Assembly (NCBI GenBank): GCA_030704615.1
Contig: CM060731.1
Coordinates: 30,504,001-30,568,000, forward strand
Source of the DNA: Takakia lepidozioides
Lineage: Eukaryota > Plantae > Bryophyta
Length of the DNA stretch: 64,000 nucleotides
Direction of reading: 5' to 3'
Shown: positions 17,401 to 31,056 of the stretch, piece after piece
How positions within the stretch are numbered: position 1 is the first letter of the stretch
How the letters are laid out: each line of letters starts with the position of its first letter
Made by a program: the position numbers and the translations under genes
The notes under the pieces: generated by a model
The model's input: only the letters and a program-made list of their open reading frames with translations
The model's database searches: none
Told to the model about the DNA's origin: nothing

Positions 17401-20400
17401 GAGTTGGTGTCAAGCACTACATTTAGATACAGGTCTTGTTATGCTTGCTAAGACAACTCTACTTTAGGAACCGTGCTAGTTATTAGCCGATGATGTGATG
17501 AAGACATCCGGTGTGGCAAGAGCTGGTTTTTGGTAACCCATCCTCCTGGAAACTTACCCTGCTATGCGAGCAAATGTCTCCTGCAATTTAGGATACCCGT
17601 TGATAAGGATGTCACCACTGACTCTGCCGATGGTCTTACGGCCAGCAAGCACATCAAGAAGGGTTGTCTTCCCGGCCCCACTGCTCCCCATGAGGGCAGT
17701 CATAGTTCTAGGCTTAGCAAACCCTGAAACATTGGAAAGCAACACCCGCGGTTCTCTAAATGCAGGTATATCCACCTGACCAATGCAACAAGACCATACC
17801 TTGAACATCAGGTGACAAAATTCACAGTACTCGCTCAATAGTGAGTTTCTCTCATCTTTGGATCATTTGAACAATTCGACAGAACATTCACAAAAGAACA
17901 GGTATGCAATCATCATAATCTCAATTTGGAGTCTCCCATATGAACATTCTCTGTTTTCAAATGGTACCACAGGTTTTCTGAGCGAGTTTGTCAATAACAA
18001 CATCACCAAAGCACAAAACAGCCACTTAGAACTCAGACAGCCAAAATGCAACCAACAAAGTATATGTCCGCAACTGCTGAAAGCATTGTTTGAAATAGAC
18101 CCTCAGACCTGAGACTTGTGGACTATTAAGCAAGTAGGTTAATTAATTTTCAAGCTTGCAGCATAGAATAGAGTACACAATGCAACACATATACTTGTCC
18201 TTTCAAATTTTACAGATATATGAAAGAAAGAGAAGAACTTTATAACCTCCAAAGGAAACTCAAAGAGCTTATAGGACACAGGAAAGAAAGCAAGATAAAA
18301 ATGGGCCCCCAACAACCAGCCAATATCTTTGGAATAAGGCTAACACACAAGAGCCATTGGTACCCAACCTGATCTGACTGATGGTGAACTGCAGTTTGCT
18401 GCAACAGGTCATCTTAGAAAAGAAACATGTACAAACATGTGTCATTACAAGAACCATCACCTCGTAAGTTATGTGGTGAAATGACAAAATCATGGGTTCA
18501 AACTTTATTCTCGAAGCTCCCACAATCACAGCAGCACCATCAGGCCTCCCACTTTCCATTTTAGAAAGCAAGAAGCTGCCTTCCTTATCCTGGAATGACC
18601 CTCCAACAGGTTTTGTGTCAGGACACTTCGTTATGGCTGAGGCATTTGGCTTTGAAGAGGACTCCAGCCTTGCAGCAGGTGGCATCCTCACCTGCAGTAA
18701 AGCCACAAATCTGGTGGGATAACGAGGGTGAAAAAGGGGAAGAGAAGGGTGGGGGAGGTGGGAAAGAGGCAATAAGAAAATCCGCCGCAGTATAACAGTG
18801 TGCTGGTAAGTTAGTTCACATGACAATAAGAAAATTGGTTGCACAGAAATCTAAAAGCCCTTTATGTTATTAATTGAACCTTTTCTAGAAATTCAACCCC
18901 AATGACAACATCCCCCATAGTTGCTAATGACAACTCTATAGCATACCTCGTCATGCCTTACATTGGCAACAGTGTAGAAACAAAGACAGGTCAGAATGCA
19001 GTAGTAGCTTGAAAGGATGATGACAGGAACCCAATATCCACGAAAGAATGTGGTGGGAAGCTGGTAAAGCTCCAGATAGGCTTGCCCAACTTTCAAGTCA
19101 TCTCTCCCCAAACAATAACTGATCTCATTACTGCAGTCCTGCATGGAAACAACAGGGGATTTCTAAAGGAGCGATATGGACCACAAGGCTTTGATAACAA
19201 CAAACATCAAGCCATGCAACATTGGACTTTCTTTGCCAGATTATACTTAATCTTCATTACAAGACAAGACCAAGAAAGAACTCCAAAGTCATGCTCCTAA
19301 CTATCACATTCTTGGATTCTGAATGTCAAAGCACATGCGATCGGCTCCTGCGACTAACTTATGAACCTTGATTTCTGTCCATTAATTTGCCTCACTTACT
19401 TGATCGTATTTACCAGAGAGGAACTCGTTGCATATCAGTGCCGTGACACCCCACTGAAGAGGGCTGATGTAGTAGACCCAAATCCACCAAGGAGGCACCT
19501 TGTTTTTGGTGACAATAAATCCAGCAAATAGCAAAAAAAATATAATAGAAAGACCTGCAAGAGTTTCACCTCAAGTGATATCAGATCTCTTTCCTTGCTT
19601 TCCTTGAATCATGACTTGTGATTCCCTTCCCTTGTTACCACTCTCCCTTCAGTTCTCTGGCTCTCGTAGTTTTGGACAGAGAAACCAACCGTATGTTGTC
19701 CCCGAATGCTAGCCATCTACAAGAGCAGAAGAGAGAGGCCTCCACTTTCAAGTACTTGCCCATAGGTTGTGGGTGCTCTATGGGCGACACTGGAGCAGCA
19801 GTGCAGGAATGCACATTGTGCTTTCTAGGATGATGCCTATACCACCCATCATAATGTCCTGCAAGTGGACCATTGTTGGCTGTGTGCCAGTCTATGGCAA
19901 TATTGGGCTGAGTTTCCATACCATGATGGGTAGCAACCATACAGAAGGGTGACGTCAGGAACTTGCCCTTAAGGTCACATCACTTGCAAGGAATGGTCAA
20001 CGTGTACATCCTCTACACGCACTAGGCACAAATGCAACATGCATAACAGTCCAAGCAACGCCACCTTGTAGCAGATGAGGAGAACATTAACCTATCCTCA
20101 TGTCCAAGTAGACAGTGTTTTGTGCCGATGCCCAGAATCTAGGTATGTGGTGTTTTTAAGACAAAAAATTCCAGACACAGCCAACCATTGCAAGCACAGC
20201 AGAGCTACAATCCCAACCTGCAAGAGCACTTGCTGCCTCCTTTGTACGGCACTTGGAAGCCAAAACTCGCACCAGTGCCGCAAAAGTGATTGCCTCAATA
20301 AATACAACTAGAACATACAATACATAATGCAATCCATAGTGGGCAGAGCTGAGCCCTGTCAGAAAATATATCAGAGGTGTATATATAAGCATCTGCATGG

Positions 20401-23400
20401 TCATGAAGGAGCATGATTGGTATAGTCTACATTAGGCCATAGTTCCATACTTCTATTCAAACAAAAGTTCATAGAAGACAGGATAAAAGGGGGGGAATTG
20501 AACACATTCACAGTGCCAAGCTATACAAACACCGAGATCCTTGGCACATACACATGAGCTCCTTGTATGAGATATAAACCCTCAAACAATTGAAAGACAT
20601 AAATGTACAGTCTCCGCCTTGCGTTATTGACGACACACAGAGTATGGTTAAAAAAACTTGTTTCCATACATCTGTGACAGGATTTCAAAGTGGTATGCAA
20701 GTGCATACTAGCATGCAGTATTTCCTACACACTCAGTATCTGTACCTCTATCAATGTGAAAGGAATCTGGCTGAGGGTGCAGGCGAGCACATAGGCATTG
20801 GGCCTGAAGAACCTCGCAGCATATTGCTTCTCAAACACCTACAAGATACAATCTAAGTCATGCTGCGATGGTTGGAGAACCAACTGCAAAACATTCAACA
20901 CAAACAATTATTTTCGTACTGAGAAGGCTTAAATGAAGATCATGAATTGTCATCTTCACTCAATCTACCAGAATGAAGTAAAACAAAAGCCCAATGGCAT
21001 GCGCAAAGACTTCCCTCAGAGAAAATCTTGTAACATCTCCAACCATGACCTGGCAGGCAAACCAAACAATTGAAAAGCAGATGAAGTTCAAGAGTTTTGA
21101 GCCAGTCAAGCCAATGTAGAACCTGCCGCTCATCTAGTTGGATGGGTATTTGAGACACTGTGTTCAACGATAGGGCCATGACTGCGAGGAAAGCAAGAGA
21201 CTTGCGTAAATCCATATCAGAACGACCTGGAGTATTTGGCACTTGGTAAAATAGAGTCCCAGTGAATGCTCCTAAGATGAGAAGCTGCATGTTCAGTGAG
21301 ATAGATCAGCTGCTGATAATGAGTCAGTATATATTTGCAATTTAAAATGAGGTAGCTGAAAAACTGGCAGAGTTAGTGAGAGATTATTTTATCTACTCAC
21401 ATGATACGACATAAAGGTGAAAAGGGAATACAAAGGTGATCTCCAACAATAGCATACCAAAGCTTGGAATCCCAAGCAACCCTTAGACAGGCAGCCTAAA
21501 TGAAGCAGTCAATGTCTTCTTGAGGCGGAAGTGTCTAAGGCCATGTCAAAAGCACGAAGAATATCCAAACAAGCAAAGTTAGGCATAAAGCTTCCCTGAA
21601 CTTGTTTCAGTCTGTGACATGGGTAAGGAGCTTTAGGGGTGACCTGAAGGGCCTACTAGACTGAAATTTAAACTGAGGGTGGGGAGTCTACCTTTGAACA
21701 ATAAACAGATGCACAGAGGAAAGGGAGATTGTCAATGCCCAATGTGCGGGCGGCCTGAAGACAGTGTCCATTGTCTGATGGGGTATTCTCATCAGAGAGC
21801 GACCCTCTTCAGGAACATCAAGAGCATAGTCCCTGCACCTTTGTGCACTCAAGATCACACTTTAGGCTGAGCCTAAGGCTCTGCCCCTGTTGGAGTCCAA
21901 CTGTTGGGCTGATCACACACAGCAGATTGATGCTTGTGTGAGGGGCTTCCTAGAGGAAATCTGGAAAGCCTGGACCAGTTGTTTATATCACAGTAATTCC
22001 CACCAGTGGAGTGAGCCCCTCACAAAGTTAGTGTCTGTTCCCGTTTGTTCCGCCCACATTGGGCGCGGCGTCTATGGGCACAAGGCTACAGAAAACATGA
22101 GTACATTCTGTCTTCTTGACGTAAATTAAGGCTGAGTGAACCTCTGGTTGCAAGAAGTGGCAACTGTGACAATTGAATGTGATGGATGATTGCACCTGCA
22201 GATTACGGGCAAGGACAAAGCTTGTGTTCCGCAATGCCAAGGTGGCCTGGCGTTTGAAAACTGTCTTTGTTGAGGGCCACCAGTCTTGCACAAACTCATG
22301 CTCAAAGACATTTGAAGCTGATGCATCCTCCTGAATCATATCAACACATCCTGATTTAGCTCATCTCAGATTTTTATCAGTCATGACACATCCATGAAAG
22401 TGAAATATGTCAATTTACATCTGCTGGGTTTGTACTTGACTGAAAGATAGATACAAGTGCAATTATCCAATATGTTCTTCAATCAAAAGATTGGGGGCCT
22501 TCCCTTCAGCAATGTCTTAGCTTAATGCCATTTCCAGAGTTACATGTACCAGTAGGTAGTAGATGGATAGCAGTACTAGTTGTAGAGCCTTCTTTGCCTT
22601 TAGATTTCAAATTTCAACATGTAGAAGCAGATAAGTCACCAGACATGTATATTCACTGATATTGGACCTCTAATACCAGAATGGAAATTCGCGAAGAATC
22701 TCCATCAACTTTTAGGTGGTTGCGAAACAATATGAGTTAAGAGTGTACCAGAGAACGCTCAAGCTGCAAACGGACATTGCCTGGGGCCTCCTGAACATTT
22801 TTTACAATATCTGCAGCAATATAGGTGCTTTCTGGAAATGCCACATACTCAAGTCTACCATGGCTGTTCACAACTCCTGTTATACAGTCTCCTTCTTTCA
22901 CTTGTGTGGTCTGCTGGATATTAGCAACAGCTGCCATTCCTGTGGCTTCGACTTCAGAAACTACAATGGCACTCTTCCCACCTGGTCCACAGGCATCCCT
23001 GGTAAATAGAAATGGATTTGCTGGGATGATCTGACACCAATCCATTTAAGATACTGGCTTTTGGATGTCCTGATGTTGTAAGCTCAGGGATGCTGATCCA
23101 TTTCAGCATCCACAATTGACCATCAACCTTTGAAACAACCTGAATATGCCACCATGTAGACCATCGCAGTATTGGGCTCATCGTGCAGTTTTAACTTAGA
23201 ATACACCAGTAAGACTGCAAAGCAGTAGAAGAGTCTGCCCACAGTCTTCACCAAGCACCACTGTCGAGCTACCCAGCTGGATGGCCTATTGTATTACATC
23301 TCACATTCACGGTGATCTTAGTAACTGTCTTGTTTAAAAGTCGAGACATTTATCATACGGAACCCAGAAAAAAGAATGCCACAGCTAAGATGTATTCAAT

Positions 23401-26400
23401 TGTTGTGATTGACAGCAACCTCACCTGCCATGACTTCTTTGTCCCTTAGTTCCAGACCTAAAGGTTTTGCTGCTTCCATCCAAAGCTCATGTACATTCTG
23501 TATGGTAAACAGGGCAGGGTAATCAGAACTTGGCCATCGAAACAAATCTAACTGGTTTTTTGCTGATGGTGTAGCAGTGAGATTCGCATCCCAGGGATAT
23601 AAGCACATCCACCAAAGTTCCCCACAGTATTGCACAACTAATATTCTGTATCAAGCTTTCTCTTAATCACCGTGTTAGAAGCGTTTGTGTAACTACAAGT
23701 ACATAGTTGGTCGGGACTGGAGTTGACTGAATCATAACTCTAGTCTGACCTATGAGTTGGTGTTCAAGAGTGACAGAGTTTCAGATTTCACCACATGGAA
23801 GATACTTTCGAGTGATGGGTACCTTTGGGCTATCAACAACACGCAACACGTCCTTATGCATATCAGAACCTGAATAGGCATCAACAAACTCATTGCTTGA
23901 TAGATGTGTGCAACCAGGCTGCAAGAAACGCACGCCTTCTTCTGTGGTTACTTCTTGTAGAAAATCTGCCACATCCACATGACTTGGTTTCATATATCTG
24001 CACCCAGAGTCTGCAGCAAGCTTAGACATATTCATGACATTAGGAAGAAAGATAGAAATGAAATGGTACTCGTCCACGGAAAGAAAGGAAGGAACTTTAT
24101 AGCATCCATAGGAAGCTCAAAGAGAAGAGCTTTTCTAGGGTAATAAATGTGCAGCTGGGATAACGAAGATAAAGCATGGCCAGTTTGTGTGCTCTTTGGG
24201 ACTCATCTTGGTTTTTTAAGGAATCATGGGTGGGGTATGTGATGCTATTCTACTTTTGGTCTGTTGAGCAAATCAATCTCTCCAAATAACCAAAGAAAAA
24301 AGAAAATCCTTGGAGCTTTCATGCTATTGGATTCCTTGTGGAAGCACTAAGCACTTTCAGAGATCTACTAGGGTAAAGTGATGATTACCCAAGATCAGCA
24401 AAGTATGGTAGCAAATCTTCACGCGGTCCCTGATAGATGATGCGGCCTTCATTTAAAACAATGACCCTGTAGGAGAAGAGAAGTGGAGACTATATAAACA
24501 AATGAGACATGTACATTGTGTTTTGTTTTGCTGCTATTCTAGTCTGAATTACACTCGTGGACTCGCAGATTAACTTTATGCCCTGGGTTTGCTAGAGCCT
24601 CCATTGGTTAACCTGCTGAAGGGTTTTGTTGTAAGCACAGCAATGAATGAAGGCCGAGCAGAACATAACTAACACACTAACCCTTACTACCTAGCTTCTC
24701 AGAGAACCCCATAGCCCAAAGGGAAACACGAAAGAACAAAAGACTTTATAATGTCCATGGGAAGCTCAAAGAGCTCACGTGACAAGGGGAAAGAGAAAAC
24801 TGGACAGAAGGGAGAAAGAGGTTCAAGTTGGAAGAATGTTTCACCTATCAAAAAGATCAAAAACTTCAGGGGAAGGTTGAAGCAATGAGAAAAGGCAAGT
24901 ATATCGTCTTATCCTTGCCATTGTGCGAAATGCACAAACAATGTCATATGTAGCAGAGCTGTCAAGTCCTGTACTGATTTCATCAAGGAAATATACAAGA
25001 AATGTCCCTGCAATGACCAACAGTTCGCAGTTTAACTATAAACACTGATCATGAGACAGAAGTGAGGGCTTGTAGAAAGGAGGAGGGAGTTAAGATGGGA
25101 ACCAATGACAAGTTTCAACCAATGCAGCGAAGGGAAAATTACGGGAAGATCCTTTCAGCTCATAATGATACATGCCTGAGACCATTTCAGCAGTTGTAAC
25201 TCGATGTCGCTCGCCTCCACTGACTCCACGTGTTGTTGTATTCCCAACAATTGTGTCAGCCGGACCCCGAAGTCCAAGTAGATGTAATGTCAACTCCAAA
25301 GGTAAATTCTCTCCCCCAAGCTCGGTCTCTACCTGCAAACAACGTCTTATGAGTACATTCTACCTGCAAGAGCCTCTTTCAAGGATTTTACACAATTCTC
25401 ACTTAAAGACACAACTAAATCACCAGAGGGACTGCTCGGAAAGAGAAGAATAGCAAAGAGCATCAATTGCTAAAACTTGCTGGGAGCTAATCAAGCACAC
25501 TTGAAAATTGAAGCAGGTTCTACACACAAGAAATTTTACTTTGTATGCTAAACTGTTGAGCCAAGAATGAAAGAAACTTACAATCCCAGCCTCGTCAGTG
25601 ACTTTTATGGCTGTTTTCTTGAAATTACTAGTACAAGCATAGGCAAACTCGCAAGTTTCGCGCACAGTGAGTGTAGGCAGATGTCTATCGGTCTGCGCAA
25701 TGAAGGTTGCCACGCGCCGCACTTTAAAATCCTCAAGACCTTTTCCATTGTAAGTCACTTTTCCCCGGAGTCGGGTGGACTTGTCGACAAACAACCTTCC
25801 AGCTAATGCTTTGTGCAAGCTGCTCTTCCCTGGGAAGCCATCTTCAGGAGCTCAGGATTGCTGGACTTAGACCACTGCTGACACAGACTAAAATTGGTTA
25901 AACACCATAGACTTGTCTGCGATTTAAGCTAAGAGTGTCAAAAGACAAACATGAGGTTTGAAGCTATATGGCACACTGATGAATCAAACCTACCACTCAG
26001 GGTCAGTCCTTACCGCATCCAGGAGGACCACAGACAAGTGTTAATGTCCCAGGCATTAAATAGCCAGAGCAATTTTCGAGCACTGTGAACTTTTGTGCAG
26101 CTTTCCTCTTGGTAAAGCAGGGCAACAAGCACTTCAGAAAAACTGATCCCACAGTCTCATAACCTTGTGTTGCTCCTGCTACTTGAGCAGTGTATGTTAT
26201 GTCCTTAAACTTGATGACCTGCAGTTTCAGTTCAGTTCAGGAAGAGTTGCGGAGCATGTTGTGGTAATATTTGCCTGAGCATAGCAGCATTATTGTTGTC
26301 AGCTCCATTATGTAGAGGAAAGCTTGGAATTCTTGAGCATAACATTAGATCACAACTAACATTTCTGAGATCTACAAGAAATGAGTATTGTACTACTGCA

Positions 26401-27633
26401 ATTGCCTGCATTGCACAGAGACAGGTCTGCAATTACCTGAGGTGCAAGTGGAGGCAAATGTTTGTTAAGTTTCATAAGAAAAGCGAGCAGGCCGTCCTCT
26501 AGTAATTTGTCGATGCCTGTAACCGGAGCACGCTGAAGCTTTGCTGCCTCGGAAGACCTCTTCTTCGTCAACACCTAAAAGAAAAGCTTGAGCGTGTTAA
26601 GGATCTCACTAGGTCTTTGTGGCACACCCGTCTTAAGGTCCATCTCAAGGAGCCACCTAAATGCACACTGCATTGCCTACGGCAGGGTATGTAGCTTACT
26701 AGGATGCCTAGAGATAACATAACGATAACCCTCGCAGATCAACTGGCAAGGTCTTTCACATTCTTGAGCTATTCCAGCTGATATAGCTGCCGTTGAATGT
26801 TACCAGTGCCGAGCAATGTGCAGTGCAACGTCTCATACACGTCCGGATTAGTTAGGATGTAACACTTTGATCGGTACTGTTTCTCACTTTAGATTTCATT
26901 TGATGGAACAAACCCCAATACTACATGTAAACCTTCTGGTATTCTTAGATGTGTATTGCTGCCTCTCGGAAGCATGGAAGATGGTCCGACTGAGTCTTCT
27001 GTACTGTTGTGAATATAAATGACAAGCAGATTACTGTTTTGTATCGAAGTAACAAGACGAACAACTTCTTTACGTAGGATGGAATAGAGCTTACGCATCT
27101 GCAGAATGCAAGGGTGGAAAGGGTCTCCTAGTTTTGTGATTTACTATTTCAAAGTCTGGCAAGCAGGCCGATGTAGTAGATATGCTTACTGATTCCAAAA
27201 TCAAATTGTTCTCCGCAGAAAGGCCGAGGTCATCCATTTGGTTATGATATTTAATCACCAGGTTCATCAGTTCGTATTTCCCAATATTTTGCAATTTATC
27301 TCTTAATCCAGTAGGATCTGGCTCAAGATTCGTTAGATCAAAAATGGTCCCTTGTTTTGCTTTGTCGCGAAGCTTTTCGAAACTCTTCCTGATAGTTTCA
27401 ACGGGGCTGGGTGAAACTCGGCCAGGAGAGGTCACAGACCCCTGCTTGCTCTTTCTAAATTGCACCGCTAAGTATAAGCTTGAATGAGTTCGCTCAAACC
27501 ATTCCCGCAACATCTCTGTGAAGTAAAACGCTTCAGACGCTCTGATTGTTCCAGAAGCTCTAAGCATCCATGCTCGTTTTTCTCTGCTCGGTGATGCAAG
27601 TTCCTCGTTTTGGCTTCCTGAACTGGAAGCCAT
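11444..27633 (-). CDS. ABCG: Full-size ABC transporter G family / pleiotropic drug resistance (PDR) protein, about 30 exons, NBD1-(PDZ-like)-TMD1-NBD2-TMD2
   Basis: Spliced exons give NBD1 Walker A GPPGCG|KSS (~26020/25825), signature [15 protein letters not shown] (~25200), Walker [13 protein letters not shown] (~24980) and [10 protein letters not shown] (~23960). TMD1 includes [17 protein letters not shown]2 has [21 protein letters not shown] (~17670), [16 protein letters not shown]|[21 protein letters not shown] and ICTIHQP, then NPASYMLE. The last exon WIWLYWLNP...KFDKR ends at a stop at 11444. GT-AG phases are consistent where checked; the 5' exons (27633-26570) are less certain. Confidence 0.93.
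21480..22110 (+). mobile_element. Old LINE (non-LTR retrotransposon) 3' fragment in an ABCG intron
   Basis: [39 protein letters not shown] is homologous to the copies at 34690-35820, 48802 and 51008. Confidence 0.75.
22749..23497 (-). CDS. PDZ-like domain encoded by two exons (23497-23425 and 22981-22749) of the ABCG gene
   Basis: In-frame join (73 nt, phase 1, plus 233 nt): [60 protein letters not shown]...[21 protein letters not shown]. It shows the K-x-LGL loop, IVVSEV strand, GD motif and terminal V-x-L-x-L-ER strand typical of PDZ. Confidence 0.7.
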
Positions 27634-28537: not shown

Positions 28538-31056
28538 TTACAAAGTACCCCAGTCATCATCCTCAAAGTATCCAGCTTTCTCAAGCAGCTCCTCGTTGTC
28601 TTCTAATAGTGCCTCCTCATTCAGAAAAAAATCATCTAGTTTGTCTCCATGAACAAGCTTACAATCAGCCCGAGCATCGCTAGGCCAGTTCTTATAAATC
28701 ATAACTAGCTTGTCAAGATTATCCACTCCAAGTCGACACCTCGTCAAACCTGTGAGAACACCTGCAACTAAAAAGATCCTTTCGGTCTCAATTTGAGAAC
28801 CGGGGATGCCAAGTATTTGTCGGGCTAGAAAGCCCACATTCGGGAACCATGTCTCATTGTCAAACCAGCAATTCAAGGGATCAAGGTTGTCCACATTATC
28901 CACTGAAACACGATGAAACAAAGACAATTATGCCTTCAACAGACCCTCGGAGGCCTCCTCTCGTGATGCCACAGATCCAAACAAAGAATCAGAAGTGATG
29001 GTATGACCTGGAAGGGGGTTTACGGTTTCAAATTCACAGTCAGCCTCGGTTGGTTGTACAACTCGAGGATTCAAACAATCCATCACTATTTAGCAGTGGC
29101 AGCAGCACCAAAGCATCATATGCTTGTACCAAAGTTTCAACCCGATCTCTACCCACGTAATTCATCAGACACTTCATGTCCTTTGGGGTGAATGCAGGGT
29201 TGACTGGACCAAAATGGACGTTACCGGCATAGTTTTAGATGACTGCAATTGATGGTGTCATCAATTGAATTTGAATTAACTCATTAAAACCGACAAATAT
29301 ATATATGTCATTGGATTCCTAGCTTCAATACGCACCCACAGCAACTCTCCAATCATGAATCCGATAAGAAATGACTCTGCTATGGACTTTTGAACACCGT
29401 CATTGTAGACTGTTACCGCAGTGAATGGAATTACAATGGACTCAAGTTCTCATATGTGCCATTGGTGAATTCCATTGAAATTTGGACTTAAGGTGACCAT
29501 TTTGGTCCACATCATAGGTATGGATTTGAAGTGGCAAAATCATTTGTCATTTGACTCATATGGACTAATATATATAAAACAAATAGGCGTTTTTTGAAAA
29601 GTCCATAGCTCATCTTGTTTTTTGGATTTTGGGTGTCATTTTTTTTCTAGAAGTATAAAAACCTATAATCTTCAATGGCTAGGTGACATATTGAAATTTT
29701 TTTGTAAACTCTAATTTTTAGTTTTTCATAATTTCTCTAAATAATATACTAAAATATTTAATGAATTATATCTTTAATATTTGGGGTAGAACTCTTTACT
29801 AAATATGTTCAGTATACCATTATCTATCACTAAAATATATATTTTGGATAGTATCATCAATTTTTTGTTTTTTGGTCATGGACTTTCATGGAGCAGGATT
29901 TGCCGTTTTTGGTCTACTCAACCCTGCAACTGCCCCTTGAAGCGAGGATCGAGCATCAAAGCCAATATGTTATGGGTCTTTGCCCTATTGAAAGATTCTG
30001 CAAATGACAAAAAATGACGCAAAACAGTGATCACCTCCATCGTCATACGACCATACAGAAACTCAATCTCTTGGTCAAATTCACCACAGCGTAGAGGGGG
30101 CTGCACTAGAGCTCGCTGCTGGTATGCAACATTCATCTTCCCCATAATGGCCATGGCAGCAAATAATGCATCACTCAAAAGCCAGTAATCTCTTCTCTGA
30201 TTCAACAAACATTGATCATGCACGAGAGGGTTTAGGGTATCAATTCCTGCCCGTACGATGGCCCAAGTTAGACCACTTGGAACTCGAGCTTGCAACAATG
30301 TGTTGCTCTGTCGCGTATAACAAATGTTAACGGCAGTAGCATACTCAAGTGTCTCTTGGAACATAATGACTTTGGAGGCAAACCTCATCTTCACTGGCGT
30401 TCTTAATTTCATGTGCCGCAGTCCAGCCTCAGTGCAGGCCCTCTGCCACTCAATCCTCCCCTTCCCGGACTTCTTTGTCCATGTTATGGTTTTCTGAAGG
30501 GCCTGCTGAGCACCCTTAAGGCTGACCTCCTTCATGCCTTCACCAACCTTGGCCTTATTTGTTGCATACTGGCAAGCTTTGCTCATCACATGTCCAAAAC
30601 AAGTACCAGGATATGGTTGCTGCAGCTTCAATGGATCACAACTCACAACAGATATGAATGCAGTTGTAAAGGTGCCAAGATTGACCCCCTCATCCTCGAC
30701 ATATGCCAAAACATTGTTGGTCAAGCCATGTTCAGCTAAGAGAGCCTTCAGCTGCTCAGCTAGAGCAACCCCACATGTATCAGGGGCCTCAAAAATGCTC
30801 AACAGTAACATGGCAAGGGTGCCACACCTCATTGATAAACTTTATTACCAATGCAAATGTATCATAACCTGATCTACTCATCCAAAGGTCAAATGAGACT
30901 GTTACTGTTGTACATTGAGCTATCAAATGCAACACATACCTCTCCATAGTCTTTGCAAGAAGGGCAGGAAGATGCTCATGCACAAGTTGTTTCTTAGAGG
31001 GAAACACCACAGTTCCATGGAGGCTCATTACTAGACGCCTCAACCATGGATTCTCT
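28538..31056 (-). pseudogene. hAT transposase, catalytic and C-terminal dimerisation part
   Basis: TVSFDLWMSR (first catalytic Asp), CFGHVMS (CxxH), MLDPRFK and FPNVGFLARQILGIPGSQIETERIF (dimerisation domain). Frameshifts, stops and a MITE insertion are present. Confidence 0.9.
29185..29936. mobile_element. PIF/Harbinger-like MITE inserted in the hAT transposase
   Basis: Imperfect TIRs GGGGTGAATGCAGGGTTGACTGGACCAAAA / TTTTGGTCTACTCAACCCTGCAACTGCCCC, with 3-bp flanks TTT/TTG. Removal restores LDPRFK-DMKCLMNYVG. Confidence 0.75.

Follow-up and report, generated by a model that had tools for sequence, protein, structure and literature searches.

Two exons of a full-size ABCG transporter gene of the bryophyte Takakia lepidozioides encode an insert between the first nucleotide-binding domain (NBD1) and the first transmembrane domain (TMD1) that very probably has a PDZ-like fold. 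The gene lies on the minus strand of the 64,000-nucleotide stretch analyzed here (GenBank assembly GCA_030704615.1, contig CM060731.1, positions 30,504,001–30,568,000; hereafter "the window", in whose own numbering all coordinates are given), where tblastn, Pfam, and open reading frame (ORF) data outline ~25 exons in the order NBD1-insert-TMD1-NBD2-TMD2 between 11447 and 27633 (ends approximate). The explanation that best accounts for our observations, and that we regard as likely, is that the gene is an expressed full-size ABCG with the two exons, B and C, as constitutive parts of its coding sequence, that these exons specify a divergent PDZ domain of ~100 residues in the NBD1-TMD1 linker, and that this domain was gained once and has been kept under purifying selection. 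The lines of evidence for a PDZ-like fold are each weak or borderline when taken alone, differ from one another in kind, and include none that points elsewhere. The window exons were searched one by one, and the complete domain was studied through its database orthologues P0004, P0014, and P0015.

The last NBD1 exon (exon A, 23823–23997; joints 23497/23823 and 23997/24389) ends in phase 0 at 23823 before a GT. Exon B (23425–23497, minus strand, 73 nt), identified from its translation and from a transcript contig (record 4, below), opens the insert with the pattern W....KPLGL.L.D and comprises 24 translated residues and one extra base, so that it ends in phase 1. A 443 nt intron (22982–23424, minus strand; joint 22978/23422, cut +3, with CT..AC ends) separates it from exon C (22749–22981, minus strand, 233 nt), the main part of the insert, which contains 77 whole codons and ends in phase 0. 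Exon D (22196–22330, minus strand; joint 22329/22748, cut +1) then resumes the ordinary ABCG linker and includes the helix ahead of TM1. Together B and C make up 306 nt, or 102 codons, with phase-0 introns on both sides. A decoy AG lies in the B/C intron 17 nt upstream of the acceptor used; an exon starting there, at 22998, runs into an in-frame stop, and only the second AG (exon start 22981) keeps the frame, as an earlier note on this DNA had cautioned. The motifs quoted in that note are all present on the minus strand, KPLGL in exon B and the other two in exon C. We read exon B as β1, an X-Phi-G-Phi element resembling a carboxylate-binding loop, and β2 of a PDZ domain, and exon C as β3 (IVVSEVE), αA, β4, β5, αB (AADIVKNV), and β6 (VRLQLER). 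The predicted domain would run in the order β1, X-Phi-G-Phi loop (KPLGL), β2, β3, αA, β4 (GD.IT), β5, αB, and β6.

Public run X1, which contains 29% of the sampled words of 21900–25400, provides transcript evidence for this layout; its contigs were placed on those 3501 letters. Its RNA status is an automatic guess, and the spliced contigs are themselves evidence for RNA. Record 4 (669 nt) connects exon B with 51 nt of exon C on one side and, on the other, with exon A, 24389–24465, 24844–25006, and 25175–25301; in record 2 (339 nt), exon C is spliced to exon D. All three joints that flank exons B and C show plus-strand CT..AC, equivalent to GT..AG in the minus-strand gene, and the one between B and C can be placed at 23425/22981. 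The further upstream joints also read CT..AC with the exception of 25006/25175, which is printed CC..TG and becomes GT..AG only after a shift within its four ambiguous letters. No joint that skips from exon A to exon D occurs among the X1 joints listed, three joints not being displayed and rare isoforms lying beyond the reach of the contigs. Both exons are thus included and spliced at the predicted GT..AG sites, and the proposal of the earlier note that they join in frame between NBD1 and TMD1 is confirmed, the phases and the contig joints being in agreement. One X1 contig (198 nt, low depth, three mismatches) lies wholly inside the B/C intron (23029–23226); pre-mRNA before splicing, carried-over DNA, and a related copy at another place are its possible sources.

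The location of the insert within the transporter was established on the Riccia fluitans orthologue P0004, in which Pfam places ABC_tran at 259–424 and ABC2_membrane at 678–889, with the insert at ~553–656. Alignment of P0004 with yeast Pdr5 (PDB 7p03), its best solved match (E 7e-57), stops at the end of NBD1 at residue 548 (Pdr5 464) and restarts at 674 (Pdr5 502), the point from which the counterpart of exon D aligns in the orthologue comparison. The NBD1-TMD1 linker is therefore 126 residues long in P0004 versus ~38 in Pdr5. From these alignments the insert domain is predicted to lie on the cytosolic side, directly ahead of the helix that enters TM1. The insert-bearing transporter resembles Pdr5 and plant PDR transporters in its ABC_tran and ABC2_membrane domains, arranged NBD-TMD-NBD-TMD, in its asymmetric pair of NBDs (LLQPS in NBD1, IHQP in NBD2), and in a short basic C-terminus ending in ..KR. 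It differs in that the NBD1-TMD1 linker is ~90 residues longer and holds a predicted folded domain, in an N-terminal extension of ~230 residues, in the lack of PDR_assoc and ABC_trans_N in P0004, and in belonging to a clade separate from rice PDR.

A search of exon C (77 residues) against 1.84 billion representative proteins returned 13 matches at E ≤ 0.001, 10 of which are true relatives: one ABCG of Riccia fluitans (P0004, 1500 aa, residues 580–653) and nine short ORFs. The other three, P0007, P0011, and P0013, were rejected as relatives of the insert, being long repeat proteins that match via several short stretches; the repeats of P0007 and P0013 carry a GD-containing word (e.g. QLKKGDCILG, IREGDSVKV), none being seen in P0011. 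A word search limited to the P0004 insert added Riccia sorocarpa and Marchantia polymorpha, and a profile search yielded 23 short exon-C ORFs on genomic contigs. On each of the six contigs inspected, exon B (..LW..A.KPLGL.L.D) lies 60–300 nt upstream of exon C (~300 nt in L001, L002, and L007; ~60–100 nt in L005 and L006), with ABCG exons on both sides. The B/C intron splits the same glycine codon in all six of these outside loci, which represent at least four distinct genes, and the exon B motif is conserved in L001, L002, L005, L006, L007, and the liverworts. Exon C is 53–55% identical to the orthologous liverwort sequences, which matches the level of conservation in the exons on either side (49–72%). 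Two of the loci (L005:2869–3300 and L006:2836–3300) are diverged paralogues from one Logan sample (SRR33208241) that have both kept the two insert exons; their insert domains are Cys-rich (..VCEVNPKG.., ..VCEVEPTG..).

Full-length proteins with the insert occur in two species of Riccia, in Marchantia, in the leafy liverwort Calypogeia, in Spirogloea, Closterium, and Chlorokybus, and in the prasinophyte Cymbomonas. Calypogeia, the algal carriers, and the second subclade described below were found by a search with the whole P0004 protein and inspection of the linker. The carriers from Zygnematophyceae are Spirogloea and five Closterium proteins (P0033–P0037), one of which, P0033, contains an apparently duplicated or mis-modelled stretch. 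A second, more divergent subclade of carriers comprises MpABCG27, a Marchantia paleacea protein, the fern Adiantum, and two further sequences, with the insert at 639–742 in P0044 (MpABCG27) and 569–679 in P0041 (Adiantum) and with QPWGV or PPLGV as the loop. ABCGs of oomycetes, brown algae, and other stramenopiles, and rice PDR, have only 2–18 residues at the insert position. In a quick maximum likelihood tree of 26 proteins, midpoint-rooted and with the insert columns kept in the alignment, a branch with an approximate likelihood ratio support (SH-aLRT) of 100 separates all 14 carriers from the insert-less proteins, among which rice PDR is placed. This distribution fits a single gain, and the insert was apparently acquired once, by an ancestor of one ABCG clade of the green lineage that stands apart from the canonical plant PDRs. 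The clade spans prasinophyte and streptophyte algae, liverworts, a fern, and Takakia lepidozioides, and its architecture is ancient and shared throughout. The unusual architecture described in the earlier note is real, in that the insert lies between NBD1 and TMD1, but it is not peculiar to the gene in the window, since the whole green-lineage clade has it. No seed-plant carrier was found in the best 120 matches of 8000 candidates scored, which does not prove absence.

The identity of the insert was addressed with profiles of 13 rows (A3, with the window exon-B row left out), 30 rows (A4), and 36 rows (A6, including the second subclade). With the canonical PDZ model PF00595, one of 13 members gave E 0.077, and the Marchantia insert gave E 0.089 over profile positions 9–80 of 81; window exon C by itself had no Pfam match, and its PDB sequence search was without useful result. 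In profile searches of the PDB, the E value of the PDLIM2 PDZ domain fell from 0.41 (13 rows) to 0.058 (35 rows) and 0.0012 (36 rows). Against 177,635 PDB sequences, profile A6 placed PDLIM2 PDZ domains at ranks 1–3, with E values of 0.0012, 0.0018, and 0.0045. The alignment pairs query positions 6–93 with residues 7–83 of the 89-residue chain in one register, loop included, and matches PLG(L/V) with PWGF, β3 with IMVTKV, GD.IT with GDIIVAI, and RLQLER with RLQLDR. The similarity to solved PDZ domains thus covers the whole domain, at a borderline level, and the X-Phi-G-Phi carboxylate-binding loop is found ahead of β2, where PDZ domains have it, as KPLGL aligned to PWGF of PDLIM2. The insert shares with canonical PDZ domains (PF00595; PDLIM2, PDB 3pdv and 2pa1) a length of ~90–100 residues and, as predicted, the succession of structural elements, and with PDLIM2 in particular the X-Phi-G-Phi loop, the GD.I of β4, a predicted helix ahead of the closing strand, and the L.L.R of that strand. 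It differs from them in being ~15–20% identical and under the Pfam gathering score, in having 10–15 extra residues between β4/β5 and αB, and in being embedded in a membrane transporter rather than a soluble scaffold.

Two further kinds of sequence comparison lead to the same family. In a comparison planned beforehand, hhalign was run against an alignment of five PDZ domains of DegP, DegQ, and DegS from the annotated E. coli K-12 genome, giving scores of 28.0–28.8 (P 1.1–1.8e-4), about 10 standard deviations above column-shuffled profiles (mean 9–10 ± 2, maximum 16.6), with 0 of 100 shuffles reaching the observed score in each of three runs. The similarity to the Deg domains (P 1.1e-4) extends from β3 to β6; the N-terminal strand and loop of the insert are not aligned locally, and the insert has no protease context and no sign of a recent common origin with them. 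In language-model features, PDZ clusters were the top-ranked ones both for the Riccia insert (0.86) and for window exon C (0.91).

Structure comparisons relied on low-confidence AlphaFold2 models, which were used for resemblance to a fold family only and not for detail; a structure match of a model of this quality can lack meaning. The model shows a strand, a short helix, two strands, a helix, and a strand in succession, as PDZ domains do from β3 to β6. A Foldseek search of the PDB gave PDZ domains for all of the top 50 matches (best E 0.17), as did ~44 of 50 structure matches of an earlier, independent model, at lower Z, and the shape matches in ESM-Atlas were likewise all PDZ (TM-score normalized by query 0.46–0.52). 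The proposal of the earlier note that the insert is PDZ-like is supported by the profile search, by hhalign, and by the structure searches, despite the sub-threshold Pfam scores; the comparison with PDZ structures that it had suggested did find PDZ similarity, at low AlphaFold confidence.

Several observations weigh against the PDZ reading or against a conventional peptide-binding role for the domain. No Pfam PDZ model reaches its threshold on the insert (cut-off 23.2 bits), and the PDB E value of 0.0012 was obtained after three rounds of enlarging the alignment. The two AlphaFold2 models are of low confidence, with predicted local distance difference test scores of 35.7 (from the 13-row A3) and 38.9 (from the 30-row A4), and the N-terminal part that bears KPLGL was left unplaced in most structural alignments. 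Closterium has PPIDL in place of KPLGL and Gly-rich expansions inside the domain, which indicates that the loop is not universally needed; in P0033–P0037 the ends of the domain are kept (the starting W and the final VRLQLERP), with long Gly/Glu-rich low-complexity expansions between them. The transporter C-termini, ..(F/Y)(D/N)(K/R)R, are not canonical PDZ ligands. Binding of the insert to the C-terminus of its own transporter is not favoured, because these ends are non-canonical and much like those of insert-less relatives (..LKR, ..QKR).

If the insert is a working PDZ domain, it would dock a short peptide of a partner protein, either a C-terminal tail or an internal hairpin, beside the membrane, and such docking would couple partner binding to the placement of the transporter or to its ATPase cycle. 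We tentatively propose, at less than even confidence, that this ABCG family carries its own PDZ receptor at the NBD1/TMD1 hinge, with a tail or internal motif of a partner switching transport or setting polarity, and that the arrangement arose before land plants. A serious rival, if a rather doubtful one, is that the fold is PDZ-derived and has lost C-terminal peptide binding, serving instead as a structural or regulatory spacer at NBD1/TMD1 that may contact the NBDs or membrane lipids; some PDZ domains bind phosphoinositides. It has to be taken seriously because the loop is lost in Closterium, where Gly-rich low complexity is tolerated as well, and because the lysine ahead of the loop is absent from the MpABCG27 subclade (QPWGV, PPLGV). 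The residue at the position where αB starts in PDLIM2, which is Ala/Asp-like and not His in the A6 alignment, and a divergence sufficient for the Pfam PDZ models to miss the domain also suit a role other than peptide binding. Against it, X-Phi-G-Phi is kept in the liverworts, in all six land-plant loci, in Chlorokybus, and in the second subclade, although only its glycine remains in Spirogloea (PLGA) and Cymbomonas (PAGC), and the loop and the β6 motif are the most conserved parts of the insert, as would be expected if the binding groove matters.

That the insert is instead a lineage-specific β-rich domain of another or new fold, its PDZ likeness reflecting convergent short motifs (GD.I, L.L.R), appears improbable. 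Neither AlphaFold model is confident, no Pfam match is significant, and earlier profiles ranked other proteins ahead of PDZ domains in the PDB, a hydrazine synthase with A3 and a DegQ protease domain with A5. However, five kinds of test indicate PDZ and nothing else, the best alignment spans the whole domain in a single register with the loop included, and shuffled profiles never came near the hhalign score. Finally, it is hardly credible that exons B and C lie outside the functional protein as a chance intronic ORF, a mis-splice, or a decaying pseudo-exon, to which the low-depth X1 contig over part of the B/C intron, the guessed RNA status of X1, and the preservation of frame on joint skipping of B and C might be taken to point, given that the contigs show splicing at either end of each exon, that conservation of the two, in frame with the neighbouring ABCG sequence, reaches from a chlorophyte alga to land plants, and that the insert is present in annotated full-length proteins of several genomes.

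The gene that hosts the putative PDZ domain is intact. The Riccia sorocarpa orthologue P0014 is collinear with it from 27567 down to 11447 (tblastn), exon 1 lies inside an ORF that begins with ATG at 27633, and the protein ends in ..LRFMKFDKR followed by a stop. Pfam matched ABC_tran and ABC2_membrane on the window exon ORFs, and these ORFs, the orthologue P0004, and the collinearity with P0014 together give the duplicated reverse order, NBD before TMD, of a full-size ABCG. Walker A, Walker B, and ABC signature motifs are all found in the ORF translations; NBD1 has the signature VSGGERHRV and LLQPS where the H-loop is expected, and NBD2 has TIHQPN. This asymmetry is the pattern usual in full-size ABCGs, and the motifs read give no sign of a dead pump. 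The transporter is probably an active pump, because the Walker A and B motifs, the NBD1 signature, and the NBD2 H-loop are retained. The NBD1 exons upstream of exon A, all on the minus strand, are the signature-region exon (25175–25301), joined to 25006 in X1 contig record 4 and read from its ORF translation; an exon with a Walker motif and the LLQPS that replaces the H-loop (24844–25006; record 4, ORF translation, tblastn); and a short exon (24389–24465; tblastn) with joints 23997/24389 and 24465/24844 in record 4. The earlier note had called the protein a PDR/ABCG transporter. It is a full-size ABCG, but does not belong to the canonical plant/fungal PDR subfamily: PDR_assoc (PF08370) and ABC_trans_N (PF14510) are absent from P0004 by Pfam and from the precomputed domain lists of P0014, P0015, and P0031, and the clade stands apart from rice PDR.

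The introns and the upstream neighbourhood of the gene contain sequences of other kinds. Just upstream of the ABCG gene, two long ORFs on the minus strand (28538–30832; 129 and 304 aa) are hAT-transposase-like pieces, the features seen by eye in their translations being ..LDPRFK.. and a pattern like the C-terminal dimerization region, W..N...FP.....A...L.IP.S....ER.F. At 21900–22133 and 25293–25400, the contig depth in runs X1 and X2 is in the thousands, versus ~10–50 over the exons, and many short chimeric joints connect the two places. A repeat search found no shared repeat of at least 30 nt between them, so that two copies of one repeat are not supported; the deep coverage is probably due to a dispersed repeat or to sequence of another locus in the introns. 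The ABCG introns also contain a 31 nt direct repeat of 87% identity (24094–24124 and 24743–24773). The ORF translations of 24699–24860 and 18139–18315 have the pattern FE.P...IK.F in common, and 24708–24824 shows a depth spike and loose ends in both runs. This short repeated intronic element may resemble a miniature inverted-repeat transposable element.

To our knowledge, and as far as full-text literature searches extend, no eukaryotic ABC transporter with a PDZ-fold domain of its own has been described. Those searches found no paper linking PDZ with ABCG in Marchantia, mosses, or bryophytes, and PDZ goes unmentioned in a survey of charophyte ABC transporters. PDZ domains of the canonical element order are scarce in plants. 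The insert domain is annotated in no database, and because Pfam misses it, the members of the clade, including the named gene MpABCG27, are annotated as plain ABC transporters. As a 102-codon module with phase-0 introns, the insert could be deleted in frame. With no seed-plant member in the best matches, the clade may be a sign of some function in transport or signalling that was lost or replaced in seed plants. In animals, CFTR and ABCC2 are ligands of NHERF PDZ scaffolds, the C-terminus of the transporter being the ligand and the PDZ domain residing on a separate scaffold protein. The arrangement predicted here would be similar in that a PDZ-peptide interaction places or regulates an ABC transporter, and different in that the transporter itself carries the PDZ-like domain and its own C-terminus is not a canonical ligand. 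If this reading is true, the insert would be a built-in counterpart of the control that scaffolds are known to exert on animal ABC transporters.

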